Assembly: GCA_051530055.1 (NCBI GenBank)
Contig: CM121342.1
Span: forward strand, 2,018,797-2,082,796
Reading direction: 5' to 3'
From: Neoechinorhynchus agilis
Taxonomy: Eukaryota; Animalia; Acanthocephala
Length of the DNA: 64,000 nt
Every line of letters begins with the position of its first letter. The first letter of the stretch is position 1. The notes beneath the pieces were generated by a model. The model did not search any database and was not told the origin of the DNA. It saw nothing but the letters and a program-made list of their open reading frames with translations. Position numbers and translations under genes: made by a program. Of this stretch, positions 1 through 33,790 are shown one piece after another.

Positions 1-3000
1 GGAATCAATGAATTCTTTTAATTTTTCACCGGCATATAAAAAACATGAATAGTTCAATCTTCACTCCATTCTTGATTTCCCGTTTTTCTAGAATGGAATG
101 TTCATTTTGTGTTTCTAATTTATCTCTGGTGACTTTTAGGCCTAAAGAAGTTCGACGAGACGGACGAAATATTGTGAAAGGGAATCATTGAATTCTTTTA
201 ATTTTTCACCGGCATATAAAAAACATGAATAGTTCGATCTTCACTCCATTCTTGATTTCCCGTTTTTCTAGAATGGAATGTTCATTTTGTGTTTCTAATT
301 TATCTCCGGTGACTTTTAGGCCTATAGAAGTTCGACGAGACGGACGAAATATTGTGAAAGGGAATCATTGAATTCTTTCAATTTTTCACCGACATATAAA
401 AAACATGAATAGTTCAATCTTCACTCCATTCTTGATTTCCCGTTTTTCTAGAATGGAATGTTCATTTTGTGTTTCTAATTTATCTCTGGTGACTTTTAGG
501 CCGAAAGAAGTTCGACGAGACGGACGAAATATTGTGAAAGGGAATCAATGAATTCTTTTAATTTTTCACCGGCATATAAAAAACATGAATAGTTCAATCT
601 TCACTCCATTCTTGATTTCCCGTTTTCTAGAATGGAATGTTCATTTTGTGTTTCTAATTTATCTCTGGTTACTTTTAGGCCTAAAGAATCGACGAGACGG
701 ACGAAATATTGTGAAGAGATCAATGAATTCTTTTAATTTTTCACCGGCATATAAAAAATATGAATAGTTCAATCTTCACTCCATTCTTGATTCCCGTTTT
801 TCTAGAATGGAATGTTCATTTTGTGTTTCTAATTTATCTCTGGTGACTTTTAGGCCTAAAGAAGTTCGACGAGACGGACGAAATATTGTGAAAGGGAATC
901 AATAAACTCTTTTAATTTTTAACCGGCATATAAAAAACATGAATAGTTCAATCTTCACTCCATTCAGGATTTCCGGTTTTTCTAGAATGGAATGTTCATT
1001 TTGTGTTTCTAATTTATCTCCGGTGACTTTTAGGCTTAAAGAAGTTCGACGAGACGGACGAAATATTGTGAAAGGGAATCAATAAATTCTTTTAATTTTT
1101 CACCGGCATATAAAAAACATGAATAGTTCAATCTTCCCACTTCCATTCAGGATTTCCCGTTTTTCTAGAATGGAATGTTCATTTTGTGTTTCTAATTTAT
1201 CTCTGGTGACTTTTAGGCCAAAAGAAGTTCGACGAGACGGACGAAATATTGTGAAAGGGAATCAATGAATTCTTTTAATTTTTCACCGGCATATAAAAAA
1301 CATGAATAGTTCAATCTTCACTCCATTCTTGATTTCCCGTTTTTCTAGAATGGAATGTTCATTTTGTGTTTCTAATCTATCTCCGGTGACTTTTAGGCCT
1401 AAAGAAGTTCGACGAGACGGACGAAATATTGTGAAAGGGAATCAATTAATTCTTTTAATTTTTCACCGGCATATAAAAAATATGAATAGTTCAATCTTCA
1501 CTCCATTCTTGATTTCCCGTTTTTCTACAATGGAATGTTCATTTTGTGTTTCTAATTTATCTCCGGTGACTTTTAGGCCTAAAGAAGTTCGACGAGACGG
1601 ACGAAATATTGTGAAAGGGAATCAATTAATTCTTTTTATTTTTCACCGGCATATAAAAAACATGAATAGTTCGATCTTCACTCCATTCTTGATTTCCCGT
1701 TTTTCTAGAATGGAATGTTCATTTTGTGTTTCTAATTTATCTCTGGTGACTTTTAGGCCTAAAGAAGTTCGACGAGACGGACGAAATATTGTGAATGGGA
1801 ATCATTGAATTCTTTTAATTTTTCACCGTCATATAAAAAATATGAATAGTTCGATCTTCACTCCATTCTTGATTTCCCGTTTTTCTAGGATGGAATGTTC
1901 ATTTTGTGTTTCTAATTTATCTCTGGTGACTTTTAGGCCTAAAGAAGGTCGACGAGACGGACGAAATATTGTGAAAGGGAATCAATGAATTCTTTTAGTT
2001 TTTCACCGGCATATAAAAAATATGAATAGTTCAATCTTCACTCCATTCTTGATTTCCCGTTTTTCTAGAATGGAATGTTCATTTTGTGTTTCTAATTTAT
2101 CTCTGGTGACTTTTCGGCCTAAAGAAGTTCGACGAGACGGACGAAATATTGTGAAAGGGAATCAATGAATTCTTTTAATTTTTCACCGGCATATAAAAAA
2201 TATGAATAGTTCAATCTTCACTCCATTCTTGATCTCCCGTTTTTCTAGAATGGAATGTTCATTTTGTGTTTCTAATTTATCTCTGGTGACTTTTAGGCCT
2301 AAAGAAGTTCGACGAGACGGACGAAATATTGTGAAAGGGAATCAATGAATTCTTTTAATTATTCACCGGCATATAAAAAACATGAATGATTCAAATACTT
2401 CACTCGTTCTTGAATTTGTTTTCTAGATGGGTCATTTGTTTGTGTTTTCCAATTTCTCTGGTGACTTTGAGCTAAAGGTTCATTTTTGAGACGGACGAAA
2501 TATTGTGAAAGGGAATCAATGAATTCTTTTAATTTTTCACCGGCATATAAAAAACATGAATAGTTCAATCTTCACTCCATTCTTGATTTCCCGTTTTTCT
2601 AGAATGGAATGTTCATTTTGTGTTTCTAATTTATCTCTGGTGACTTTTAGGCCAAAAGAAGTTCGACGAGACGGACGAAATATTGTGAAAGGGAATCAAT
2701 GAATTCTTTTAATTTTTCACCGGCATATAAAAAACATGAATAGTTCAATCTTCACTCCATTCTTGATTTCCCGTTTTTCTAGAATGGAATGTTCATTTTG
2801 TGTTTCTAATTTATCTCCGGTGACTTTTAGGCCTAAAGAAGTTCGACGAGACGGACGAAATATTGTGAAAGGGAATCAAAAATTCTTTTAATTTTTCACC
2901 GGCATATAAAAAACATGAATAGTTCAATCTTCACTCCATTCTTGATTTCCCGTTTTTCTAGAATGGAATGTTCATTTTGTGTTTCTAATTTATCTCTGGT

Positions 3001-5085
3001 GACTTTTAGGCCTAAAGAAGTTCGACGAGACGGACGAAATATTGTGAAAGGGAATCAATAAATTCTTTTAATTTTTCACCGGCATATAAAAAACATGAAT
3101 AGTTCAATCTTCACTCCATTCTTGATTTCCCGTTTTTCTAGAATGGAATGTTCATTTTGTGTTTCTAATTTATCTCTGGTGACTTTTAGCCCAAAGAAGT
3201 TCGACGAGACGGACGAAATATTGTGAAAGGGAATCAATGAATTCTTTTAATTTTTCACCGGCATATAAAAAATATGAATAGTTCAATCTTCACTCCATTC
3301 TTGATTTCCCGTTTTTCTAGAATGGAATGTTCATTTTGTGTTTCTAATTTATCTCCGGTGACTTTTAGGCCTAAAGAAGTTCGACGAGACGGACGAAATA
3401 TTGTGAAAGGGAATCAATGAATTCTTTTAATTTTTCACCGGCATATAAAAAATATGAATAGTTCAATCTTCACTCCATTCTTGATTTCCCGTTTTTCTAG
3501 AATGGAATGTTCATTTTGTGTTTCTAATTTATCTCTGGTGACTTTTAGGCCTAAAGAAGTTCGACGAGACGGACGAAATATTGTGAAAGGGAATCAATGA
3601 ATTCTTTTAATTTTTCACCGGCATATAAAAAACATGAATAGTTCGAATCTTCACTCCATTCTTGATTTCCCGTTTTTCTAGAATGGAATGTTCATTTTGT
3701 GTTTCTAATTTATCTCTGGTGACTTTTAGGCCTAAAGAAGTTCGACGAGACGGACGAAATATTGTGAAAGGGAATCAATGAATTCTTTTAATTTTTCACC
3801 GGCATATAAAAAATATGAATAGTTCAATCTTCACTCCATTCTTGATTTCCCGTTTTTCTAGAATGGAATGTTCATTTTGTGTTTCTAATTTATCTCTGGT
3901 GACTTTTAGGCCTAAAGAAGTTCGACGAGACGGACGAAATATTGTGAAAGGGAATCAATGAATTCTTTTAATTTTTCACCGGCATATAAAAAACATGAAT
4001 AGTTCAATCTTCACTCCATTCTGATTTCCCGTTTTTCTAGAATGGAATGTTCATTTTGTGTTTCTAATTTATCTCTGGTGACTTTTAGGCCTAAAGAAGT
4101 TCGACGAGACGGACGAAATATTGTGAAAGGAATCAATGAATTCTTTTAATTTTTCACCGGCATATAAAAAATATGAATAGTTCAATCTTCACTCCATTCT
4201 TGATTTCCCGTTTTTCTAGAATGGAATGTTCATTTTGTGTTTCTAATTTATCTCTGGTGACTTTTAGGCCTAAAGAAGTTCGACGAGACGGACGAAATAT
4301 TGTGAAAGGGAATCAATGAATTCTTTTAATTTTTCACCGGCATATAAAAAATATGAATAGTTCAATCTTCACTCCATTCTTGATTTCCCGTTTTTCTAGA
4401 ATGGAATGTTCATTTTGTGTTTCTAATTTATCTCTGGTGACTTTTAGGCCTAAAGAAGTTCGACGAGACGGACGAAATATTGTGAAAGGGAATCAATAGT
4501 TCGATCTTTCACAATTCTTTTAATTTTTCACCGGCATATAAAAAATATGAATAGTTCGATCTTCACTCCATTCTTGATTTCCCGTTTTTCTAGAATGGAA
4601 TGTTCATTTTGTGTTTCTAATTTATCTCTGGTGACTTTTAGGCCTAAAGAAGTTCGACGAGACGGACGAAATATTGTGAAAGGGAATCAATGAATTCTTT
4701 TAATTTTTCACCGGCATATAAAAAATATGAATAGTTCAATCTTCACTCCATTCTTGATTTCCCGTTTTTCTAGAATGGAATGTTCATTTTGTGTTTCTAA
4801 TTTATCTCTGGTGACTTTTAGGCCTAAAGAAGTTCGACGAGACGGACGAAATATTGTGAAAGGGAATCAATAAATTCTTTTAATTTTTCACCGGCATATA
4901 AAAAACATGAATAGTTCAATCTTCACTCCATTCTTGATTTCCCGTTTTTCTAGAATGGAATGTTCATTTTGTGTTTCTAATTTATCTCTGGTGACTTTTA
5001 GGCCTAAAGAAGTTCGACGAGACGGACGAAATATTGTGAAAGGGAATCAATGAATTCTTTTAATTTTTCACCGGCATATAAAATA
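1..5085 (+). repeat. 180-bp tandem satellite array (about 28 copies, runs off the left edge); each monomer contains a hammerhead-like motif
   Basis: The same sequence recurs at 1, 181, 361, 541 and again at 2881/3061 and 3241/3421/3601. Copies are nearly identical apart from scattered SNPs and homopolymer indels. The array ends abruptly near 5085. The unit contains EcoRI, XbaI and StuI sites. Confidence 0.98.
134..180 (+). ncRNA. Minimal type I hammerhead-like motif in the satellite monomer (first copy shown), core CUAAAGA (G5->A)
   Basis: CTAAAGA-A-GTTCG acgaga CGGAC-GAA-ATAT-T-GTGAAAGG: 5-bp stem II, GAA, palindromic ATAT in place of stem III, and an imperfect stem I (cttttaggc/gtgaaagg). 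It differs from the CUGANGA core at one position. Confidence 0.7.
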
Positions 5086-5602
5086 ATCTATATTTCTAAT
5101 CACCAAACAAAAATACATAAGGAAGGCGTAAGACGTCCCTAGATGGACAGTAGGTAAATAAGGGTTGTGAGAGAGGTAAATAACAAACGGTCTATTTAAT
5201 TATAAATTTTCCGATTGACGAATGTGGTTGCTTCTCTTATTTAACATCATTTGTCAAGTTTTCATGAAACGCGTATCTACGTTTATTTCCTTCATTTTCA
5301 TTAATTGTAGGTAAGATTTTTGATAGAAAATTTAAAAGTTCGGACGTGGATATATTTAAAAAATAACAATTGAACTGTGGAGACGTAGACGAGAAAGAGA
5401 CTGCGAAAAGGATTTTTTGTCTAGAACACGGGGTTAAATCAGTGTACTTTTGTTCTCTTATGGGAATCTAGATAAAAAGAAACTTTGAAGTTTGCCACAT
5501 AATTCATCCAATCCAAAAAGAATTTTGCACGATAGTATGAGCGGTAACCCATAATCGCGCGAATTCGTATTTATTTTTGGTATGGAGACTATATTGCACG
5601 TA

Positions 5603-7726: not shown

Positions 7727-9654
7727 AGTTACCTCATGTGTACAAAAAGGTCAATTAACGATAGAAAATATGCGAAGTCTGAAAAATATGAGGTTCTAAC
7801 TCATGTATTTTCGACCATCCAAGACGTAGCTATTAAGTTTCGCTAAGATTTTAGAAATTTCAATCACCAAATGTACTTGTGATAGGATTTTAGTTTTTCA
7901 ATGCCACTCATCTTAAATCCTCATCGAAAAATTTATCCTTTTTGTATAAAATACAGAGCCAATAAATGCGAAATTGATATTTTTCATGTAACGCTTTCAT
8001 TTTTGAATATCGAGTTTCGTCAACACTGAGCATTTTGACTTATCACAATAATAAACATCAAAAATTTACCAATTTTATACAAAGTAACCAACTAATTAAA
8101 TCGAAATTGAGGTAAGCAATCTTTTTAAAGGACGCTTTAATTTTTCAATTTTTTTGAGGGCGTTCTACTACTTGCTTGCAACACTTTTTCTTGAACTCAG
8201 CATTACGATCTTAAAACCTACTTAAAAGGTTAATAAAAATGGCTTCCCCTTGATTCGTAAAGGCTTAAATTAATCGGACGTAATATTGGATCTCTTCTTT
8301 ATCATCCTAGCTAACCGAAATAGATTTTCCGCTGTTTTCCTATCACCCAATTGAGTTAAAAAAATTAGTGTTAGCGCAACCACCGCAAAATTAAAAGCGA
8401 AATTTTCACGAAAAGTTGCGGTACAGAGAATACCTGAACTTTTAAAGTTTGATATATTCCGAAAAATCGTAGTTTCTAAAATCAAATGACTCGTCCTGAT
8501 AGCAAAGTATCACGTCGTCGATAGTTCGATTTAACACAATCCCACATTCTCAGTAGATGGCAGTTTTTTAGAACTTTACAGCGTTGGAAGTGTGCTCGCT
8601 TTAACAAAGAGATAAAATCGAGATTTTAACAGATAGATGATTTTGTTCAAAAAACTTAATTGTGGACGGATCGCTAATTTCTTCAGATCGCCGTGTCTTT
8701 TCTTTTCGAGAGAAGTTTAGCCTGAATTTTAAAGACAACTGGAAAGTGCTTGCATTATAAAAGCTATCATTGCCGTTCTAAAGAACTTCTTTGAGGCAAT
8801 TAAAAAACGAAAATCATACCTTTGCTATATACTAAAAAATTTTTTTTTGTTGCCTAGCTCTATTATCAAATATTATCGAAAAATAAAATTTCATTTCCTT
8901 CTTTCTTGAGTACCGTTCATACAGTATTTGAGATTTTTTAAACCAAATTGATCGAATGTAAGTTAAAAATCGAAGGCCATTTTACTCCATTTGGTGTTCC
9001 TCTTTGTAACGTCAATTTTGAACTACAAGTGAAGTTGCGTGGTGTTTTAGGCAGTAACAATCAAAAGGTGGATTGCTTGCCTACAAAAAGTATTTTTCAA
9101 GCGTGATGAATAAAACATTTTTGAGGTTCAGTGGGTACCGTTTAAGAATGTCTTTGTCAGCGTTGTTGCAAAGCGAATGACATAGAACGAATGCGCAGTC
9201 TCAGATGACATCCTAACGCACAATTGTGTTTGAAGGAACGACCAAAAAGGCTCAGAAAGCCCATTCAGACAAACGAAGATTGTGGAGAACGTGATGGATC
9301 GCAGTTTCTTCGTATTCGTTCCAGTCGATCATGCTAATTTGAAGAGTTTCACCTGCTTGCGACGTACATTTTAATACTAAAAGGACATAAGACGAAACCT
9401 TCTTCAGTATGAACTTTACCTAAAGAAATTAGGAGAATGGATTCATTTATTATTCCTTTTTAATCATGTACAACAAAAAAGATTTGTCAGTTCACGATTT
9501 TAGCTCATTTCGAAGTTGCGCGGCGCAATCGAATTCTATGAGTTGAGTTACTAAGAAAAATGTATTTTACATTACCTTAAAATATTTCTATGGGAGGCAA
9601 AATATAAAGCATCAAGTATCTTCGACGAAGTTTGTTGTGTAGATTTTTAAAAAT

Positions 9655-9715
9655 TGATTACTCGCCTGAAAAAGTCCGAAGAGACGGACGAAAAATTGTG
9701 AAAGGGAATTGATAA
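9655..9715 (+). ncRNA. Solo diverged relative of the satellite HHR segment (core CUGAAAA, G8->A)
   Basis: tcgc-CTGAAAA-A-GTCCG aagaga CGGAC-GAA-AAAT-T-gtgaaagggaatt. It shares gagacggacgaaa..ttgtgaaagggaat with the satellite, has a fully Watson-Crick stem II, and a 4-bp stem I (tcgc/gtga). Confidence 0.75.
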
Positions 9716-11460: not shown

Positions 11461-11662
11461 TTTTAGTTTCAATCAATTAGCGATCTTTGATTCAGAAAAA
11501 TAGATTTATCTTGAAAATTTTCGGCCTTTTCGTTGGCCTTCTTCAGTTAATTGTTTGCAAGTTAGTTGAAAAAACTTGCATACAATTGACTGAAGAAGGC
11601 CAACGAAAAGGCCGAAGATAAATCTATTTTCTGAATCAAAGATCGCTAATTGAAACTGAAAC
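11461..11662. repeat. About 200-bp palindrome (arms 11461-11562 and 11574-11662, 11-nt spacer) built from two HHR-bearing segments in opposite orientation
   Basis: The arms are near-perfect reverse complements. The left arm (minus strand) reads CTGAAGA-A-GGCC aacgaaaa GGCC-GAA-AATT-T-tcaa. The right arm lacks 9 nt covering stem III. A third copy lies at 28885-28990. Confidence 0.9.
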
Positions 11663-14154: not shown

Positions 14155-16614
14155 GGTTTTTTCATAAACACTTAAAAATAAAACGGATGTTTATTGAAGG
14201 GCAATAAATAAGGGAAGTCTACAGTAAGCTAAGAATTCCACTTTTGGAATTGTCCAAGGAGATTTAGGAATTAGTAAAGCAAAATCTTCTCGCGGAAGAC
14301 CACCTCGCTCTTGACATCTCCCGGATTAGCCGATAATCCGTAATCATGATGTACACCTTGGTTATATGGTTCGAACAACAAAAATGGTATATCTGTTGTT
14401 GTGGTTGGCAGTTGAAAATCTAAAGCCGTCTGAAGCTGAATCTCCGGTTTTAAGTTAAGACTTTCATTCGGTTCCTCGAATTCGTCGCGAAATTGCATGT
14501 AAACTTCATTTTGGTCCGATTGTGGATGCTCATTTGCCTGTTCATTTTTAAATGCTTGAGAAGGTAGAAAATTCTTGAAGGTCCTAAATTGAAAGTTTGT
14601 ACTCATTTTGTCATTGGGAGGAAATTTCTCTTCCTTGATGTCTAAAGATTCAGTTGGTCGTCCGCATTTGTGATGCGATTGTGTCCGATATCCATCTTCT
14701 TTCTCTGGAGGATGATTCGCTATATCGTTTTTTTCTAGTGGAGATGACATCAACTTTTCGAAAATGGGAAATTGAAGGTTTGTATTCAGTTGGTTATTGA
14801 GAGAGAACTTCTCTGGTTTAAAATCTGAAGATGTAGTTGGCCGCTCGCATTTCTGGTGCGATTGTGTCCGAAATCCATCTTCTTCTTTCTCTGGAGGATG
14901 ATTCGCTATATCGATTTTTTCTAGTAGAGATGACACCAACTTTTCGAAAATGGGAAATTGAAGGTTTGTATTCAGTTGGTCATCAGGAGAGAACTTCTCT
15001 GGTTTATAATCTGAAAATGTAGTTGGCCGCCCGCATTTGTGATGCGATTTGGATCGTAATCCATTGTTGTATGAGGTTGGAAGCTCATTTGCTATCTGGG
15101 TGTTGTGTAGATGAGACGATATCAACTTTTCAAAGATTGGAAATTGGACGTCATTGTTCGTTTGCCCTACAGGAGAGAAAACCTCTGGTTGGAAAGTTAA
15201 AGCTTCTGTTGGCATTCCGATTAAATGATGAGATTCTGGGTGCAAACCGTCCATTCCGGGTTTTTTCAGCTGCGAAGATAAGAACTCCAGAATTGGAAAT
15301 TTTAAATTTGTCTCGATATGACCGGGCGATGTGTGATCATTTGGCATTCCGAATCTATGATGCGATTGAGGAATTATCTGTTCGTGGTGGTATACTGGGA
15401 CCGTTACATGTGACGGGTTTAATAATTCCAACGAAACAGGAATTCCTTCAAGCTCAAGTACGGTTTGTAGCATTGATTGAGCTTCATTAAATTGTGGTTT
15501 GGTGGCGGTAACTGGAAAGACATACGCTGCACCACTGATTTCTGTTCTCATTATGAATCCTAGTTTAATTAAACGATCCAAAAGAAGGAGTGCTGTGTAT
15601 TCTTTTAGAATATCTTCATTGATACCCAATCTGTACAATTCGTCCGGTAACCGTATACGAAATAACAGCGGCTCATTGATCTGAATTAATCCGTTCCCAA
15701 TCCGGACGTGACTTGGATGATATTCGATCAAAAAATCATTTATTCGGTGGATTGTGTACGGTAATGATCGAACTCCAACAAATAGGAGAAGACAGTAAAA
15801 AATTGTAGCTTTAGATAACATTGTACGGTGTATTTTACAATTCAAAAGTATCGAACTATACCATATGGAAGGGTTGGTATGCACGGGATTGGAAGTAGCA
15901 AATTATTTGTGTGTTTGCGGTCGATTTTGAAAGTGATGTTTTTATTTGATGGCTTTTTCAACCGGTATAGTTTCTTAGATTTTGTTTTAAAAGTGGCGTG
16001 CATGATATTTAGTATGTCGTAAAGTTTATAATCTCTACAGTGAGCATTCTTCTATCGGACGAACGATGGCCAATCCTCTTCGAAATCAATAAATAATGAC
16101 TCAAAAATACTAGTTTACTCATAATTCCGTAACAATATAGAACGAATGCCGACTGGGAAATTAAATTTTAATTCTGCTTTAATATATTGATGATTATATT
16201 TTCTCGAATTAAATACTAAATAAACAATAATGTTTTGCTGTCCATAATTTTCATAATTTTCATTGAAGTTATTTAGGACACTTTAGTTTGTGTTCGGATG
16301 TTGTTTGCGTTAAATGGCAAATAGATAACTGCGATATATAACCATTTATTGTAAGTTAGTTAAAAACAAAATAAATTCGTAAGCAAATACCTCGAAGATC
16401 TAATTCAAATGCTGAAAAAAAACCTAAGTTCGCTTATAAGAATTATAAACTGATCGAATGTTTATTCGTCAAATAAACTGTTACGTCCGCTCACATTGCA
16501 ATACAGGATTATTACAATATCAGTCTTCAGATTGATATCGTTTATCTAAACCGACTGTGGTTTAGATAGTTTATTTGATCAATGGTCGAAATCTAAACAA
16601 AGAACAAAAATACA
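14155..16614 (-). repeat. Left arm of a 2.46-kb inverted segmental duplication (partner 22142-24602)
   Basis: It is the reverse complement of the right arm, with identical ORF-track proteins and a handful of SNPs in the non-coding parts. Confidence 0.95.
14271..15884 (-). CDS. Orphan secreted protein with about 62-aa internal repeats, copy A (537 aa; likely start M22 at 15821)
   Basis: Long intronless ORF with a signal-peptide-like MLSKATIFYCLLLFVGVRS. The repeat SHHKCGRPT..KPEKFS..QLNTNLQFPIFEKL..IANHPPEKE occurs about 5 times. An AATAAA lies downstream of the stop. Confidence 0.8.
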   Translation of the reverse strand: MHTNPSIWYSSILLNCKIHRTMLSKATIFYCLLLFVGVRSLPYTIHRINDFLIEYHPSHVRIGNGLIQINEPLLFRIRLPDELYRLGINEDILKEYTALLLLDRLIKLGFIMRTEISGAAYVFPVTATKPQFNEAQSMLQTVLELEGIPVSLELLNPSHVTVPVYHHEQIIPQSHHRFGMPNDHTSPGHIETNLKFPILEFLSSQLKKPGMDGLHPESHHLIGMPTEALTFQPEVFSPVGQTNNDVQFPIFEKLISSHLHNTQIANELPTSYNNGLRSKSHHKCGRPTTFSDYKPEKFSPDDQLNTNLQFPIFEKLVSSLLEKIDIANHPPEKEEDGFRTQSHQKCERPTTSSDFKPEKFSLNNQLNTNLQFPIFEKLMSSPLEKNDIANHPPEKEDGYRTQSHHKCGRPTESLDIKEEKFPPNDKMSTNFQFRTFKNFLPSQAFKNEQANEHPQSDQNEVYMQFRDEFEEPNESLNLKPEIQLQTALDFQLPTTTTDIPFLLFEPYNQGVHHDYGLSANPGDVKSEVVFREKILLY

Positions 16615-17519: not shown

Positions 17520-17830
17520 CTCCCCGATATATGATTTATTGTAAATTTTCGACCGCATGCAGTCCTCTTCAGACATGTATAATATGCGTTTTACATTAAT
17601 TTGTGCTTACATTACTCATTTCAGGTACCCTGGGTCGTAAATCCCGAAAGTGATCTCACACTTCCTTGAGTGTTGGTAAGTTTGATGCTAACTCTTGGAA
17701 TTCTCAGATTCCAAGACTGCGTATTACCCTCTGTACAACATACAGACACAAAAAGCGCCTCCTTGATCACTCTTCTCCTATTGTTAGTTTCCTTGGTCAA
17801 CACTGCAGCTTTCGAAAAATCGATTTCTAA
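17520..17830 (-). mobile_element. Penelope-like element 3' fragment (GIY-YIG C-terminus + HHR)
   Basis: DFSKAAVLTKETNNRRRVIKEALFV..GNTQSWNLRIP resembles the end of PLE endonucleases and is followed by the HHR. Confidence 0.6.
17540..17576 (-). ncRNA. Minimal type I hammerhead motif with intact core
   Basis: tgt-CTGAAGA-G-GACTG catg CGGTC-GAA-AATT-T-aca. It lies downstream of a PLE GIY-YIG C-terminal fragment. Confidence 0.75.
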
Positions 17831-22141: not shown

Positions 22142-24602
22142 TGTATTTTTGTTCCTTGTTTAGATTTCGACCATTGATCAAATAAACTATCTAAACCACA
22201 GTAGGTTTAGATAAACGATATCAATCTGAAGACTGATATTGTAATAATCCTGTATTGCAATGTGAGCGGACGTAACAGTTTATTTGACGAATAAACATTC
22301 GATCAGTTTATAATTCTTATAAGCGAACTTAGGTTTTTTTTCAGCATTTGAATGAGATCTTCGAGGTATTTGCTTACGAATTTATTTTGTTTTTAACTAA
22401 CTTACAATAAATGGTTATATATCGCAGTTATCTATTTGCCATTTAACGCAAACAACATCCGAACACAAACTAAAGTGTCCTAAATAACTTCAATGAAAAT
22501 TATGAAAATTATGGACAGCAAAACATTATTGCTTATTTAGTATTTAATTCGAGAAAATATAATCATCAATATATTAAAGCAGAATTAAAATTTAATTTCC
22601 CAGTCGGCATTCGTTCTATATTGTTACGGAATTATGAGTAAACTAGTATTTTTGAGTCATTATTTATTGATTTCGAAGAGGATTGGCCATCGTTCGTCCG
22701 ATAGAAGAATGCTCACTGTAGAGATTATAAACTTTACGACATACTAAATATCATGCACGCCACTTTTAAAACAAAATCTAAGAAACTATACCGGTTGAAA
22801 AAGCCATCAAATAAAAACATCACTTTCAAAATCGACCGCAAACACACAAATAATTTGCTACTTCCAATCCCGTGCATACCAACCCTTCCATATGGTATAG
22901 TTCGATACTTTTGAATTGTAAAATACACCGTACAATGTTATCTAAAGCTACAATTTTTTACTGTCTTCTCCTATTTGTTGGAGTTCGATCATTACCGTAC
23001 ACAATCCACCGAATAAATGATTTTTTGATCGAATATCATCCAAGTCACGTCCGGATTGGGAACGGATTAATTCAGATCAATGAGCCGCTGTTATTTCGTA
23101 TACGGTTACCGGACGAATTGTACAGATTGGGTATCAATGAAGATATTCTAAAAGAATACACAGCACTCCTTCTTTTGGATCGTTTAATTAAACTAGGATT
23201 CATAATGAGAACAGAAATCAGTGGTGCAGCGTATGTCTTTCCAGTTACCGCCACCAAACCACAATTTAATGAAGCTCAATCAATGCTACAAACCGTACTT
23301 GAGCTTGAAGGAATTCCTGTTTCGTTGGAATTATTAAACCCGTCACATGTAACGGTCCCAGTATACCACCACGAACAGATAATTCCTCAATCGCATCATA
23401 GATTCGGAATGCCAAATGATCACACATCGCCCGGTCATATCGAGACAAATTTAAAATTTCCAATTCTGGAGTTCTTATCTTCGCAGCTGAAAAAACCCGG
23501 AATGGACGGTTTGCACCCAGAATCTCATCATTTAATCGGAATGCCAACAGAAGCTTTAACTTTCCAACCAGAGGTTTTCTCTCCTGTAGGGCAAACGAAC
23601 AATGACGTCCAATTTCCAATCTTTGAAAAGTTGATATCGTCTCATCTACACAACACCCAGATAGCAAATGAGCTTCCAACCTCATACAACAATGGATTAC
23701 GATCCAAATCGCATCACAAATGCGGGCGGCCAACTACATTTTCAGATTATAAACCAGAGAAGTTCTCTCCTGATGACCAACTGAATACAAACCTTCAATT
23801 TCCCATTTTCGAAAAGTTGGTGTCATCTCTACTAGAAAAAATCGATATAGCGAATCATCCTCCAGAGAAAGAAGAAGATGGATTTCGGACACAATCGCAC
23901 CAGAAATGCGAGCGGCCAACTACATCTTCAGATTTTAAACCAGAGAAGTTCTCTCTCAATAACCAACTGAATACAAACCTTCAATTTCCCATTTTCGAAA
24001 AGTTGATGTCATCTCCACTAGAAAAAAACGATATAGCGAATCATCCTCCAGAGAAAGAAGATGGATATCGGACACAATCGCATCACAAATGCGGACGACC
24101 AACTGAATCTTTAGACATCAAGGAAGAGAAATTTCCTCCCAATGACAAAATGAGTACAAACTTTCAATTTAGGACCTTCAAGAATTTTCTACCTTCTCAA
24201 GCATTTAAAAATGAACAGGCAAATGAGCATCCACAATCGGACCAAAATGAAGTTTACATGCAATTTCGCGACGAATTCGAGGAACCGAATGAAAGTCTTA
24301 ACTTAAAACCGGAGATTCAGCTTCAGACGGCTTTAGATTTTCAACTGCCAACCACAACAACAGATATACCATTTTTGTTGTTCGAACCATATAACCAAGG
24401 TGTACATCATGATTACGGATTATCGGCTAATCCGGGAGATGTCAAGAGCGAGGTGGTCTTCCGCGAGAAGATTTTGCTTTACTAATTCCTAATTCTCCTT
24501 GGACAATTCCAAAAGTGGAATTCTTAGCTTACTGTAGAAGTCCCTTATTTATTGCCATTCAATAAACATCCGTTTTATTTTTAAGTATTTACTTAAAAAC
24601 CG
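22142..24602 (+). repeat. Right arm of the 2.46-kb inverted duplication
   Basis: Reverse complement of 14155-16614. Confidence 0.95.
22872..24485 (+). CDS. Orphan secreted repeat protein, copy B (identical protein to copy A; likely start 22935)
   Basis: The ORF-track translation is identical to 14271..15884. Confidence 0.8.
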   Translation: MHTNPSIWYSSILLNCKIHRTMLSKATIFYCLLLFVGVRSLPYTIHRINDFLIEYHPSHVRIGNGLIQINEPLLFRIRLPDELYRLGINEDILKEYTALLLLDRLIKLGFIMRTEISGAAYVFPVTATKPQFNEAQSMLQTVLELEGIPVSLELLNPSHVTVPVYHHEQIIPQSHHRFGMPNDHTSPGHIETNLKFPILEFLSSQLKKPGMDGLHPESHHLIGMPTEALTFQPEVFSPVGQTNNDVQFPIFEKLISSHLHNTQIANELPTSYNNGLRSKSHHKCGRPTTFSDYKPEKFSPDDQLNTNLQFPIFEKLVSSLLEKIDIANHPPEKEEDGFRTQSHQKCERPTTSSDFKPEKFSLNNQLNTNLQFPIFEKLMSSPLEKNDIANHPPEKEDGYRTQSHHKCGRPTESLDIKEEKFPPNDKMSTNFQFRTFKNFLPSQAFKNEQANEHPQSDQNEVYMQFRDEFEEPNESLNLKPEIQLQTALDFQLPTTTTDIPFLLFEPYNQGVHHDYGLSANPGDVKSEVVFREKILLY

Positions 24603-27270: not shown

Positions 27271-28884
27271 CTTCTAATCATATACCCGCGGCTCTCGGAC
27301 CTTTAAATCGTTTTGGTCTATTTTTTAGGAATTTTTACTTAAATTTTTAGTTACTCTTTTTCAGGAATCGGAGCCCTCCCCATTCTCTATTCTTTTGACA
27401 CTTATGATTGCTTCATTCCCCCTGCAGCTTTTCGGCCATAATGGTTTTGCTAGAGACTCGCAAGCCTTCATTCGCAAGTGGTAGCTACCTAAACTTCGTT
27501 TCCATGTATGGACTGAAGATTTTGTTGATTTTTGCATGTTATGACTTGTATTGAAGTCTAAGACGCATATTCGTGTAATCTTTATGTTGTTTCCAGCAGA
27601 GTGCTATTTTCATTAACACAGGTTTGAACTGATTATCCAATTAGTCACCGGATTTTGATCTGGATGATTTTAACTCGCAAGGTTTAACGTTCTTAACAAA
27701 AAATCTGCCGCCTATCACATTGTGCTACCGGAAAAACCATTTCTACATCTACGCTAAAAAAGCTTTCGGTATATCACCTACACAGAAAACATAATTAAAT
27801 GCTGGATTCAAGAGGGATTCATTAGATATATTGATTTTTAATTTTTTATAGCGTTTCTGATCATAAAAATGTGATTGCTTGTGAAGGTTGCGTTCCTTGT
27901 AGTTTTAAAACTTAAATTACCATTGTTGAAACTAAACGTAAAAGTACAAGAACTGTGCATACCGATCAATATATTTTTCGGTCAAAAATATTAATAATTT
28001 ACGTTGCTAATTACAGGTGAGACCCATTGCTATTGGTTGTATATCCGCCGGTTAGCTGCCATGATTGCATGCAAAATTGCATCTCCTTTGCTGTTTGACG
28101 AGGTCCTACCATCTCTACTCCATTTTAGTGTTCCAGGAGGAGTAGAGGCAATTGTGAGCTCTTGACCTTATTACTACTCATAGCCGGTTGTTACGACAGC
28201 GGCTCAATATTTGACGAAATGTGATAACGAGTTTCACAGGACGATCCTTTCGGCCCTCTTCAGTTCTCACATTATATCAATGAGCTAGGTTACAGCCTTT
28301 CGTCACCATTAACCATTTGGTATTTAGACGACTGCCGCATAAAATGATCTATCACTGCTGTGCTTGGCTATGGTTGCTTCCAAGGTTCGAAAAATGCGAG
28401 ATCGTCGCAAATAGACGCTTCAATAATACTTTCTCTCTGAGAGGTTTTGGTGTTCTACGCGCGGCAGAAATAGCAATCCCAGTCTTTAACTCATCCGTGT
28501 CCCGAACAAGCCGCTCAACCTCGATGATTTTGCCGGCATTCTTATCCGACCGTTCAATAATTAAAGATCAATAGTGCCGAATCGCCCCTTAAACTGATGA
28601 ACTGGCTGTCCCAACGGATATATCAATACAAAAATGTTGGTTATACCATTTCGGTCTTAGAAGGAATTCCGAAACCTCATTTGTCCCTGTGACGAGCCCA
28701 AAGAACGAGCACGCCAAATCGCGGCCGCAACCGAATGGTCCGGTGGTTTTTTTAACGTTTCACCAATCTCGTAGATTGGTACTAAAATGGATGACTGCTC
28801 CTTTAGTCTCGCTTAGGAATTAGGCCCAGGCGTGGCTTGCACAACCATTGCGGCATGGAAGCGCTGTGTCAAGACCGACGGCAC

Positions 28885-28990
28885 TTTACAATTGACTGAA
28901 GAAGGCCAACGAAAAGGCCGGAAATTTTCAAGATAAATCTATTTTCTTAATAAAACATCGCTAATTGAAACTGAAACTATAATGAATAAT
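28885..28990 (+). repeat. Third copy of the 11.5-kb palindrome arm (HHR with A13->G), inserted in CRE debris
   Basis: caattga-CTGAAGA-A-GGCC aacgaaaa GGCC-GGAAATTTTCAAG-ataaatctatttt..cgctaattgaaactgaaac. Confidence 0.85.
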
Positions 28991-30559: not shown

Positions 30560-33155
30560 TTAATTTTTACCCGGACGAATCGCATCGAATGCATCCGCTA
30601 TCGCATTCAGTTCTCTGCATGTATTTAAAGCATTCGTGAGATATTGATCTTCGAATAGTGACGGTTTTGGAGGTTTAGAATGTGTACCAATGGCTGTGAT
30701 CTTTCTTTGAGGAGGTTTTCCAATGAAGTTGTGTTTTGATCTTGATTTAACATACAATTGAATTTTTTTGGCAATGTTGCATTGCTCTTAGGACCCAAAG
30801 TTTGCCCGGCGATATTCGAAAATGGCATATTCGTACCGACTGGATCGTCACCTCTTAGTTCATCTATTTCTGAGTTTCCTATTCTCCAATTTAAAAGACG
30901 GCGTATCATCCGTTCAAAAAGCCTGAGTCTATGTTGATCACGATTATTCGCATCTTCAAAATCCTTTGTTTGCTTGCACATTTGGGACTTTAGTTCTTTT
31001 TGTGATTGCTCCAAGACTGTCACCTTTCTTGTACAGCGGCCAACATGATCTTCCAAATCTTTGTTCCTTTTTAAAAGCTTGTTTTTCTCAAGTTTGTTCT
31101 TCTTTAGTTCTTCAATCATTTGATTATTTAACTTCTTCATCATTTCCCATTGCTCGTGAGCGTAAACCGAAACGTTTTCACGAAGTTCCGCCTTCAATTT
31201 GCTAATTTCACTGTCTTGCGTCTGAATAATTATTGAACGATTTTGATTTTCGCTTAAAGCGCAATCAAACTTCCTTTGAATGGTTTCCACTTTTTCTAAC
31301 AATTCTCCATTTTGCACAAGGAGATTTTCTAACTTCATGGAACTTTCTGCTAGTTTCGTCTTCTTCTCTCTTAATTCCTTATTAAGAGATTCGGATTTTG
31401 TTTTGAGATCACAGATCTCAGATTGAGCATTTCCCAAGCAACCCTGAAGTCTCAGATTTTCTTCTTTGCTTTCCATAGGTCGTGTATTTTCCTCGAAATT
31501 CCTCGACTGTTCCAAATGTTCGAGTTTTCCCATAATGTTTTGAAGTTTTAGTTCAAGTGATTGCTTATCAGTTTTCCATTTTATTTCCTTCTGTGAAAAC
31601 TGTTCTACTCTTTTTGCGGCCATGTCTGTTTCTGCTCTCAATTTAGCTTCAACTTCTGCAATTTGCCGATCTCTCGATTTCCTTTCAATTTGATTTTGGT
31701 CGTTGATTTCCTTTAGTTGATTTAATTTAGCCTTAAGGTCATTTATCAGTTGACCGTTAGCCTTGAGCTCGATAACCATTTCTTCATTCCGCTTTATAAC
31801 TTTTTCTAAATGTTTTTCCGATTCCGATGAACCTTGTACCTTCGCATCAAATTTCTCATTTGCCCCTTTAAGGGATCTCTCAAGATTAATTATTTTCCAC
31901 TGGCTTTCATCAATACGACATTGGATCTCCCGTTCCGTTTTTTACAAATTGATTTCCTTTTCTCGCTGAGCAGACGAAAGTTTCGTTTTTAAATCCCGAT
32001 TTTCCTTCGTCATTTCCTCTAATTCTGAAGATAGCGTTGCACACTTCTTGTTTTTCTGCTCAATTTCATATTCATTAATTTTCTGCTTTTTAGTCAGTAC
32101 TGAAATTTTAGCATTAAGGTCATTGTTTTGATTTGATACCTCCTTCAGTCTGCGTTTGTTGTCAATCAAATGATTCTCTTTCTCATTCAAACTTTCTAAT
32201 ATTTCCTTTTGGTATTCCTGCAATTTCATCACCTCCTCTTGCGCGTCTTCTGCGAACGATTTAAGCTCATTTTCTTTTTTCGATAAATCAGCATTCGTAC
32301 TTTTCGCAAGTCTTAAATCCTCCTTCAAGTTAGCATTCTGTTTTGCTAACTCTGTAATCCTCATATTTTGGTCTGAACACTTTTTGTCCCTTTCCTCAAA
32401 ATCGTTTTCTATCTTTCTCGTGATCATTCTCAGCTTTACAATTTGTGCGTTTATTTCATCGTTTTACGCGGATATTTCTTTTAGCCTGCGATTCGTGTCC
32501 TCTAGCAGCATTTCCTTCTCACTTAGCTCCTCCTTCAGCATTTTGCATTGGGAATCAATATCTCGGATAGGGGACAAACGACTTTCTGTTTGAGGCTTTG
32601 TTTCTTGTTTTCGAAAATTATCTATATTCACATTTTTATTGTTTGTACTCTTGGAAGCCCTTTCTATATGCTTACTCCAACCGAAAGGCTCGTCAACCGA
32701 TTCATATTTTCCGAGCGGATCGCCTCCGTTTTCAATACATTGTGTGCCATTTAATAGGTCGGGACTTTTAATTGACTCTTTCTTGCCGTCGTTGCTTCCC
32801 TTGCCATTTGAATGCTCAGTTTCCTTTTTTTCCTTTGGTTTCTCTAGCGCAGTGGATTGACCATTTTCGCTGTTCTGAATAGCAACAATCAGATCCGACA
32901 AAGATGAGTAAGGGCAATTTTTATCGTATGAGTTTCCGTCTTCACTAGCAAGGATATTGTTTATTGTTGTTTTCCGGTCTTTGTCTCCATCGAACAACAA
33001 TGCTGACAAAAGGCAAGTGAGTGTCGTTTGGTCGCTCTGGTTCAATCGTGTACACATTTGTAAAAAAAATCACTTACAGAAGGCGTTGACAGTCCGTAGC
33101 AGTAAAAGCTCAAAATCAAGGAAGCGCGCCCCAATAGTTCTAATGGTTTAATTTT
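30560..33155 (-). pseudogene. Long coiled-coil protein gene, copy 1 (nonsense codons, 5' end replaced by a PLE fragment)
   Basis: ORFs 32464..33057, 31942..32427 and 30625..31779 are collinear with copy 2. It has TAA at positions where copy 2 has CAA or TCA. Confidence 0.8.
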
Positions 33156-33164
33156 GTTCGAGTG

Positions 33165-33790
33165 GAGAAAGTAATTAAATTAAATTAAATTAAATATTTC
33201 GATCCTCTATCTCGGATCTTCTTCAGTATCTGAAAAACACAAACAGGGATTGTCAATCACTTAGTGTCTAATAATATCCGGCGGAAGTCTCAATCTCAGC
33301 TTGAAATCCGACTTGTTGCCATTGAACGTTTCGAAAGCATCTATGTAGAGGGCTTCCACGATAATTCGATCGAAACGACAATCGTTGCAAACGAGGGTAG
33401 TCGCACCACTAAAATCGATAGTGTGCCCTGTGTTTTTTGCATGGGTCACCACTGCGGAACTGATGTCCGTATTACGTGCAATTGATGACCTGTGCTCGTT
33501 CATTCCTGTTCGCAACCGGAACACGGAATTCGGTAGACCGCACCAGATGAGTGTTGGCCATTCTTGGGACATATCAGTCCATGTAGAGTGCGTCCCCTCT
33601 TAGTGAATGCATCTACTCGCTTGGCCTCACATCCCGATTTGCGATCATCAGGAAATGGCAGCTCGACAAACATCGCTTCCTTTGTTGACTTCGTTTCCTT
33701 GTTGAAGGTGTGGCGTACATTCCGAATGCACCGTTCAACAAGATGGAGTGGATAGCCCTAGGCTGTGTAATGAGGAGATTGACTTCCTGA
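33165..33790 (-). mobile_element. Penelope-like element 3' part (GIY-YIG C-half) with downstream hammerhead (33191-33230) and (TTAAA)n tail
   Basis: FRLRTGMNEHR..SAVVTHAKNTGHTIDF..RIIVEALYI, then cagata-CTGAAGA-A-GATCC gagataga GGATC-GAA-ATAT-T-ta. Confidence 0.85.

Follow-up and report, generated by a model that had tools for sequence, protein, structure and literature searches.

A single-locus 180-bp satellite in Neoechinorhynchus agilis with a relic Penelope-type hammerhead, probably amplified in place

A 180-bp tandem satellite of Neoechinorhynchus agilis carries in its units a minimal type I hammerhead motif of Penelope type, in which the core nucleotide G5 has been lost throughout, and relatives of this motif with intact cores are dispersed elsewhere in the same genome. 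The array was probably formed by local tandem amplification of a founder that came from the tail of a Penelope-like element (PLE), with a dead hammerhead and with multiplication in place at the DNA level. We set out below the evidence on the array, on the hammerhead relic and on the parent family, and weigh the RNA-based and functional alternatives.

Extent, unit and setting of the array

TRF on the window (the whole 64,000-nucleotide stretch of DNA that was analysed) reports an array of period 180 at its start, with 28.2 copies, 95% matches and a score of 9264, and the hammerhead motif recurs in every unit; the first-pass annotation, which had described a 180-bp satellite of 28 hammerhead-bearing units, is thus borne out. 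The start of the window cuts the array, and a genome search with a reading of the boundary places the remainder upstream, giving ~38 units and 6.9 kb in all (Table 1). In the unit alignment most units are 95–99% identical to the consensus, with one outlier at about 2331-2504 (72%). The description of the unit as nucleosome-sized in the first-pass annotation concerns its length. The full 180-bp unit was found at no second locus in the assembly, other large contigs included. Word depth in the DNA runs is 70-350x that of the flank, on the order of 100 or more copies if contig-derived read depth is taken as a rough copy-number guide only, so that the assembly may have collapsed or omitted part of the satellite. 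The array lies 2.0 Mb from the start of its contig in a gene-rich setting: an expressed gene ends 470 bp from it, and actin, MAM33 and other genes lie within the same 64 kb.

Each unit is a composite. Homology to the dispersed hammerhead family begins some 10 nt ahead of the core and extends to the 3' end of the family, ~113 of the 180 bp (the final ~20 nt being a by-eye alignment on the common CATGAATA...CTTCAC/TTTACA ending), and the unit junction coincides with that 3' end. The other ~67 bp, here called filler, occur nowhere else in the assembly: an 83-bp query at E values up to 1 returned 37 matches, all within the array, and comparison by tblastn and blastn with six PLE ORFs and tails gave, apart from the hammerhead, no match better than E 0.7. 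The earlier statement that a hammerhead retroelement unit had been amplified therefore holds for the ~113 bp that come from a hammerhead-bearing tail and not for the filler. The filler includes a small hairpin, CCATTCT...AGAATGG.

Neither edge of the array shows filler continuing into unique flank. The last, truncated unit adjoins a partial tail of the ancestral dispersed-family type, which matches tail positions +16 to +50 of L033 with a score reached by 0 of 1000 shuffles. At the other end, 64 bp upstream of the array start, lies an inverted partial unit.

Table 1. Coordinates of the array, its parts and its relatives (positions are those of the window unless a contig is given)
Feature	Coordinates	Strand	Basis or remark
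Tandem array, part within window	1..5083	+	TRF, genome search, upstream boundary, unit alignment
Whole array	G000:C2:2016997-2023880		Genome search, boundary reading
Inverted partial unit	C2:2016890-2016933	inverted	89% identity
Representative unit, predicted cleavage site to next predicted site	3764..3943	+	GAAATATT anchors at 3756 and 3936; consensus
Tail-homologous part of unit (~113 bp)	3722..3834	+	Helix I strand, hammerhead and 71 nt of tail to family 3' end
Array-specific filler (~67 bp)	3835..3901	+	No match elsewhere in assembly
Hammerhead relic, one unit	3720..3775	+	Own covariance model 24.6 bits, fold, alignment with intact-core relatives
Helix I, 5' strand	about 3723-3731	+	Part of relic
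Core CTAAAGA	3732-3738	+	A at 3734 replaces G5
Bulged A	3739	+	Precedes helix II
Helix II	3740-3744 with 3751-3755	+	GTTCG/CGGAC
GAAATATT	3756-3763	+	Palindrome AATATT in place of helix III
Predicted cleavage	3763/3764	+	UU/G site
Helix I, 3' strand	3764-3772	+	Part of relic
Partial tail adjoining last truncated unit	5080..5113	+	29/34 identical to L033
Solo relative of satellite motif	9654..9709	+	39.8 bits, own covariance model
Sister array L071	C2:11627800-11631600		Lesions GAAATAAT or CTTAAGA
Sister array L053	C3:5135238-5136644		Lesions TTGAAGA plus GACAAAATATT

A hammerhead relic in the unit

GAAATATT, following a stem-loop (GTTCG/CGGAC) and a CTAAAGA-type core, is present in 28 of 28 window units and in 37 of the ~38 units of the whole array, so that the G12-A13-A14 box, A15.1 and a non-G base at the cleavage site are kept; the unit alignment was anchored on GAAATATT, which biases the apparent conservation of that box, among units that are in any case mostly 95–99% alike. 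Helix II includes one G-U pair, closes on a 6-nt loop and has an unpaired A ahead of it. AATATT is its own reverse complement, and this arrangement, the same as in the intact copies, would permit dimer pairing. The minimum-energy fold of the 60-nt motif gives helix I (6 pairs plus 1) and helix II, and helix I pair 12-45 covaries among the sequences of the covariance model.

G5 is an invariant nucleotide of the hammerhead core, as mutagenesis and crystal structures have established. None of the 36 aligned units has G at this position, and in the DNA-run contigs no G allele reaches 5% of depth at 4826 or 5006, in agreement with the earlier observation that the array holds no copy with intact CTGAAGA. 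The companion statement, that every monomer contains CTAAAGA, was slightly overstated: a core of this type runs throughout, and the exact sequence is found in 23 of the 36 aligned units (25 if two with small deletions are included). Further core changes, at C3, U4, A6 or position 5, occur in the other 11: CAAAAGA in three, CCAAAGA in two, CGAAAGA in two, and CTCAAGA, CTATAGA, TTAAAGA and one degenerate core once each. Such extra changes in a third of the units look like drift and not like constraint. The hammerhead thus reads as a relic and is presumably inactive: helices I and II, the GAAA box and the AAUAUU palindrome have been kept and the essential G5 has been lost. With that nucleotide missing, the array should not self-cleave or yield circular RNA.

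Scoring with hammerhead models, a check suggested in the first-pass annotation, gave a positive answer from our own model. The Rfam hammerhead models were silent, with no match at gathering score in the whole window and none at E values up to 10 in the array; they likewise failed to match the intact-core hammerhead at 33194-33226, used as a positive control, so the Rfam test is blind to this hammerhead class. Our own covariance model, trained only on other Penelope-type hammerhead families with a gap-free alignment, gave the units 20.6-28.8 bits (typical value 24.6, E about 0.01), above the best background score of 17.6 bits in 128 kb. BLAST joins the satellite motif to copies with an intact core (E 6e-17). 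The CTGAAGA-containing 186-bp repeats at 14.6 kb and 23.7 kb were rejected as hammerheads; they reach only 13.8 bits and lie inside two inverted 537-aa ORFs.

The parent family and its link to Penelope-like elements

The 32-nt hammerhead has 296 matches in the genome at three or fewer mismatches, versus 0 for a reversed control. The units of the array account for about 38 of them, and the remaining ~260 make up a dispersed family with intact core (CTGAAGA). Perfect matches with CTGAAGA number 28, and 7 of the 28 have the GTTCG stem of the satellite and so differ from its motif only at G5. The G5A allele at one mismatch was found by genome search only inside the array. The parent family is abundant in the genome as ~130-bp solo and head-to-head copies, with many inverted pairs, and head-to-head pairs have been published for PLE hammerheads (PMC4209133). 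The solo relative listed in Table 1 has G5 intact and A for G8 (CTGAAAA); its helix II is perfect (GTCCG/CGGAC) and is followed by the GTGAAAGGGAAT tail as in the satellite.

These relatives support the derivation proposed earlier, from a Penelope-type minimal hammerhead by change of G5 to A: the related family with an intact hammerhead, whose absence would have been one of the points against that proposal, is there, with ~260 members and 7 that differ only at G5. The suggestion that amplification came after, or together with, the loss of G5 is supported as well.

The hammerhead at 33.2 kb had been taken for that of a PLE. No reverse transcriptase (RT) or GIY-YIG ORF lies beside it, nor beside six dispersed perfect copies; the adjoining genes are host genes (GTPase, MCM, subtilase, kinase and cNMP-binding). 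We therefore regard the six copies as solo tails, and the 33.2-kb hammerhead too as a solo tail and not a whole element. The T-rich tract that the first-pass annotation had remarked on before both hammerheads is indeed present at both, but its spacing differs (29 nt before the core in the satellite vs. 9 nt at 33.2 kb) and it is absent from the parent family, so its common occurrence is probably coincidence.

The genome has at least 145 GIY-YIG matches, and GIY-YIG ORFs in it have a hammerhead plus a ATCAATAAATT-type tail about 40 nt downstream. An 826-aa ORF with RVT_1 and GIY-YIG has a minimal hammerhead of the same style on both sides. For the parent family itself, the link to an ORF is one decayed copy, L068, with a weak RVT_1 match upstream and a GIY-YIG match abutting the hammerhead; the intact PLEs of the genome have the same architecture as L068, but other hammerhead sequences.

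Published PLE minimal hammerheads occur as solo units and as close opposite-strand pairs, with a palindrome replacing helix III (PMC4209133). The motif described here is like them in being type I, in the unpaired base before a 5-bp helix II, in the short interrupted helix I and in the short palindrome that would allow dimer pairing. It differs in the replacement of G5 by A throughout the array, in the 38-unit tandem arrangement, in having no ORF nearby, and in that roughly one third of every unit does not derive from a PLE.

Sister arrays on the same tail family

Two other arrays, L071 and L053, share with this one the same hammerhead and tail module in 160-185-bp units, with cores mostly damaged or the palindrome broken; they differ from it in their lesions and in their filler. 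A filler common to the sister arrays was rejected on sequence comparison, the fillers being unrelated. Unrelated filler, together with mostly damaged cores or a broken palindrome, fits independent local amplifications. The similar unit sizes in the three arrays (162, 160-184 and 180 bp) might, on the other hand, be the natural unit length of a mobile non-autonomous element.

Proposed origin and alternatives

In the origin that we favour, the founder would have been a short insertion, truncated at its 5' end, of the 3' tail that carries the ribozyme in the PLE family, and the change of G5 to A would have arisen in the founder or in an early unit. Unequal exchange or replication slippage, acting on the DNA itself, would have multiplied the 180-bp block, tail and filler together, at its site, with partial homogenisation afterwards. 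The inverted partial unit upstream of the array was counted in favour of a PLE origin, head-to-head pairs of this kind being common in the parent family. That amplification took place at the DNA level and that the ribozyme is no longer active are both inferences; a tandem array cannot by itself tell DNA exchange from reverse transcription of multimeric or circular RNA.

A rather unlikely account takes the array to be a retired minimal-hammerhead retrozyme. That is, the 180-nt unit with its filler would be a non-autonomous, PLE-dependent RNA element, and the array would have been made by reverse transcription (template switching of tail RNAs, or rolling-circle copying of circular RNA), laid down with the ribozyme working or regardless of it, with G5A spread later by homogenisation. 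Some ~38 tandem 180-bp units, each with a type I hammerhead motif, fit the published 150-450-bp form (PMC7229834), and an origin of such elements from PLE terminal repeats has recently been argued (bioRxiv 10.64898/2026.07.22.740005); the PLE-style inverted twin at the left edge, the junction at the 3' end of the parent family and the seeding of at least three arrays of 160-185-bp units by the same tail family agree with it as well. The filler, however, is absent from all other loci and so gives no sign of mobility, the fillers of the sister arrays are unrelated, and no unit has an intact core. No stable fold of the unit RNA was found (z +0.44 for the plus strand and +0.15 for the minus strand vs. 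200 shuffles), the fold being no more stable than the shuffles. RNA-type contigs, which cannot show RNA ends or circles, contain unit sequence at a depth of 8-530, a signal no higher than DNA background could give, since an intergenic background of 2-4 multiplied by at least 100 copies could account for it. Some transcription of the unit sequence is possible, given that RNA-type runs contain it.

The known non-LTR retrozymes and hammerhead satellites, such as newt satellite 2, Dolichopoda pDo500 and Schistosoma Sm-alpha (PMC7229834, PMC5680766), are similar in that their GC-poor units, 150-450 bp long and arranged in tandem, each contain one type I hammerhead with a dimer-dependent helix III. 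They have, as features of their own, canonical active hammerheads, many loci, high copy number, abundant linear and circular RNAs and stable folds, whereas in this array the hammerhead is minimal and mutated, there is one locus only, the fold is not stable and RNA enrichment is not clear.

We also think it unlikely that the tail RNA of one PLE family repeatedly founds arrays of 160-185-bp units via an RNA route, picking up unrelated filler. Were this so, through template switching or rolling-circle copying by the RT of the element, the array would indeed be a retired minimal-hammerhead retrozyme, and the genome would hold every stage between PLE and dead satellite, with the solo tail and the retrozyme-like array as intermediates.

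Since G5 is invariant in the hammerhead core, it is highly improbable that the G5A hammerhead still works as a dimer and that the array yields processed RNAs; the drift-like core changes in a third of the units weigh in the same direction, and no molecule-end pile-up was listed, ends being something that contigs cannot show. What would favour such activity is that nearly all units retain every other hammerhead feature, that unit sequence occurs in RNA-type runs, and that PLE minimal hammerheads are weak in vitro anyway and may need cofactors (PMC4209133).

A (peri)centromeric role had been suggested too, but nothing points to one, and we hold recruitment of the hammerhead unit as a functional (peri)centromeric satellite to be extremely improbable. 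A 180-bp unit is within the length range of many centromeric satellites, and read depth hints at more copies than are assembled; even 350 copies, however, would make about 60 kb at a single site, and the array is one 6.9-kb locus that lies 2.0 Mb into one contig, has no counterpart on the other large contigs and is set among expressed genes, one of which ends so close by. A merely accidental likeness between a hammerhead and an unrelated satellite, for which the missing Rfam match might have spoken had Rfam not also missed the intact-core hammerhead at 33194-33226, has a negligible probability, being excluded by the homology to ~260 intact-core copies and by the score with our own model.

Significance

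The array adds to the known cases in which a mobile element has given rise to satellite DNA, and it leaves the general picture unchanged. On the favoured reading, DNA-level amplification of a PLE tail, it offers a clean, datable case of a satellite born from the ribozyme-bearing tail of a retrotransposon, where the parent family still lives on with intact cores in the genome concerned, alongside sister arrays whose lesions differ. For annotation, the repeat is to be treated as a relic and not as a ribozyme gene. The case fits the recent proposal that animal hammerhead repeats descend from Penelope-like elements (bioRxiv 10.64898/2026.07.22.740005).

The array and its damaged hammerhead

Positions 1–5083 of the window form one tandem array of period 180 (28.2 copies, 95% matches by Tandem Repeats Finder), with a hammerhead-type motif in every unit, as the first-pass annotation had it. 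The window start cuts the array, whose full extent is G000:C2:2016997 to about 2023880 on the contig of the assembly that contains the window, roughly 38 units in 6.9 kb. In the unit alignment most units are 95–99% identical to the consensus, with greater divergence among those on the left. One unit at about 2331–2504 has only 72% identity, with many substitutions and indels before its hammerhead, and neighbours at 96–99%; it may be an old unit spared homogenisation, or a product of conversion from elsewhere.

Each unit reads, in order, helix I strand, CTAAAGA-type core, one unpaired A, helix II (5 bp, GTTCG/CGGAC, with a 6-nt loop), GAAATATT and GTGAAAGGG, the last of which pairs back with the upstream helix I strand. 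The minimum-energy fold of a 60-nt stretch recovers helices I and II; its stability is not above that of shuffles, as expected for helices so small. The AATATT of the unit is self-complementary: it is the short palindrome that stands in for helix III in the minimal hammerheads carried by Penelope-like elements (PLEs), and is thought to permit dimer pairing (PMC4209133).

A CTAAAGA-type core occurs throughout, but the exact sequence, previously ascribed to every monomer, is present in 23 of 36 aligned units (25 if two with small deletions are included), the remainder being further altered in the core, at C3, U4, position 5 or A6. G5 is absent from all 36, and DNA-run data mapped to two units gave no A-to-G variant at the two G5 places at 5% or more, in agreement with the earlier failure to find an intact CTGAAGA copy. 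The satellite hammerhead is thus presumably a fossil, its activity probably lost because G5 is an invariant base of the hammerhead catalytic core. U4 of this core (window 3733 and equivalent) has more alleles than any other site of the unit: in the 36 units T has changed to A three times, to C twice and to G twice. The rest of the sites that vary have two alleles each.

Rfam gave no hammerhead match in the array; the intact-core motif at 33194–33226 (minus strand) likewise escapes it, and it is therefore blind to the minimal-hammerhead class. We built a covariance model, R1, on eight minimal hammerheads that belong to other families of the N. agilis genome, with relatives of the satellite excluded, and scanned the whole window without filters. 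Satellite units scored 20.6–28.8 bits (typically 24.6, E about 0.01), a single observation because the units copy one ancestor, against 17.6 bits for the best background match and 30–61 bits for hammerheads, intact or nearly so, at other positions of the window. Direct homology is stronger evidence than these scores that the motif is no chance match.

Homology to a dispersed, probably PLE-derived tail family

A genome search with the unit dimer returned many 50–95-bp matches outside the array, spanning the hammerhead and the following 50–100 nt (best, 93% identity over 58 nt, E 6e–17). A 32-nt intact-core pattern, allowing up to three mismatches, had 296 genome matches, about 38 of them the array's own units, and its reversed control had none. 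Of the 28 perfect matches, seven carry the satellite's GTTCG stem, so that G5 is their sole difference from the satellite motif. A related intact-core family is thus present in the genome, which supports the origin first proposed. The G5A form, at one mismatch, was found only within the 180-bp array.

In an alignment of the unit with eight dispersed copies plus the solo copy at 9654–9709 of the window, homology sets in about 10 nt ahead of the core and extends across the hammerhead and a further 71 nt of tail, ending where the dispersed copies end. The earlier reading of the whole unit as a hammerhead unit is therefore not supported: about 113 of its 180 bp are tail-homologous, and the filler of ~67 bp has no match elsewhere in the 46-Mb assembly (E up to 1) and does not resemble PLE ORFs or tails. 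Nor was the suggested link through a T-rich tract with the 33.2-kb hammerhead supported.

A genome search for GIY-YIG domains gave at least 145 matches. An 826-aa ORF with RVT_1 and GIY-YIG has identical minimal hammerheads ending in GAAATATT on both sides, about 45 nt away, and three GIY-YIG ORFs have a hammerhead and a ATCAATAAATT-type, satellite-like tail about 40 nt downstream. Copies of the parent family are mostly solo or head-to-head, beside host genes; only one, the decayed L068, is preceded on its strand by traces of reverse transcriptase and GIY-YIG. There, either the tail starts inside a truncated endonuclease region or it was inserted there. Placement of the satellite in the PLE tail class is thus well supported by architecture and context, and weakly by a direct ORF link. 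Directly after the hammerhead, PLE tails conserve AATCAATAAATT (e.g., window 3774–3785, A-variant units), which includes AATAAA, possibly a polyadenylation signal of the element's transcript.

Elsewhere in the window, the head-to-head GGCC pair is a typical Penelope twin insertion, and the single GGCC copy, with GGAA in place of GAAA, is probably another dead one. ORFs adjoining the 33.2-kb hammerhead (30625–33057, minus strand) contain no RT or GIY-YIG domain, making it a solo tail. The two 537-aa ORF copies, without a Pfam match and separated by about 7 kb, belong to an inverted duplication.

Features in the window and at related loci of the assembly (G000; contigs C1–C3)
Feature	Position	Strand or size	Details
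Tail fragment of ancestral dispersed type	5080–5113	 	Directly after last unit; 29/34 identical; 0/1000 shuffles reach score
Head-to-head minimal hammerheads, other family	11503–11558 and 11578–11634	- and +	GGCC stem, GAAAATTT; R1 59.3 and 30 bits
537-aa ORF, two inverted copies	14271–15884 and 22872–24485	- and +	Internal 186-bp (62-aa) repeats
Intact-core minimal hammerhead	17531–17584	-	R1 36.7 bits
GGCC-family minimal hammerhead	28884–28939	+	R1 61 bits; GAAA box reads GGAA
Intact-core minimal hammerhead (33.2-kb)	33181–33238	-	R1 39.3 bits
GIY-YIG match running straight into parent-type hammerhead	L068:1228–1366 = G000:C1:1595227–1595365	-	30 bits, one TGA inside
Sister array on same hammerhead and tail module	L071 = G000:C2:11627800–11631600	About 23 units x 162 bp	 
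Sister array on same hammerhead and tail module	L053:6206–7612 = G000:C3:5135238–5136644	About 9 units x 160–184 bp	 

Genomic setting and RNA

The full unit occurs only at the array locus, 2.0 Mb from the start of a 16.4-Mb contig, in a 64-kb stretch whose other ORFs include actin and a MAM33-family gene. Summed word depth in a DNA run, which is not itself a copy number, was 8,500–42,000 in satellite bins vs. 121 in unique flank, hinting at roughly 100 copies or more, vs. 38 assembled. Even at the upper figure the repeat would be minor, about 60 kb in all, and with one locus among genes the suggested centromeric role is unsupported.

RNA-type data were read as contigs, in which RNA ends, strands and circles are invisible. 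A probable RNA run has a 1,683-nt contig (depth 403) with 174 nt of unit and then unlike sequence; another has a 156-nt unit contig (depth 8.5). A well-covered contig of the RNA-type runs (depth about 380) ends at 5557–5583, only 470 bp from the array. Single-copy intergenic flank has depth 2–4 in these runs, so with 100 or more copies of the unit its signal could come from background DNA or read-through.

Edges, sister arrays and origin

On the left, the array's first unit begins near GAAATAT, followed by GGAATCAAT, and 64 bp further left lies an inverted partial unit (89% identity), a head-to-head layout typical of PLE insertions (PMC4209133). The last unit stops within its tail. At neither edge does filler run into unique flank. 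At G000:C2:2016985–2017000, upstream of the window, contigs of RNA-type runs read GTGCCTCCGAAATATTGGG... where the assembly reads GTGCCGAAATATCGG..., and the left edge is therefore polymorphic between samples.

The main rival to multiplication in place is that the array is a retired retrozyme, written by a PLE reverse transcriptase on the template of a short non-autonomous RNA (bioRxiv 10.64898/2026.07.22.740005). The PLE-style left edge suits this, as do the similar unit sizes of the three arrays; the single locus counts against it. The C2:11.63 Mb array has some intact cores and a broken palindrome, GAAATAAT, and the C3:5.135 Mb array has TTGAAGA cores and GACAAAATATT, the core lesions differing from array to array. 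Fillers of the three arrays show no similarity (of 500 shuffles, 187, 403 and 175 score at least as high), and such unrelated fillers also tell against the retrozyme, as does the lack of a stable fold: whereas the circular RNAs of retrozymes are compact (PMC7229834), on neither strand is the fold of the unit RNA more stable than those of shuffles (z +0.44 and +0.15). The best explanation is that a single PLE-tail insertion, with about 67 bp of other sequence, multiplied in place, and that G5A was either present early on or spread through homogenisation.
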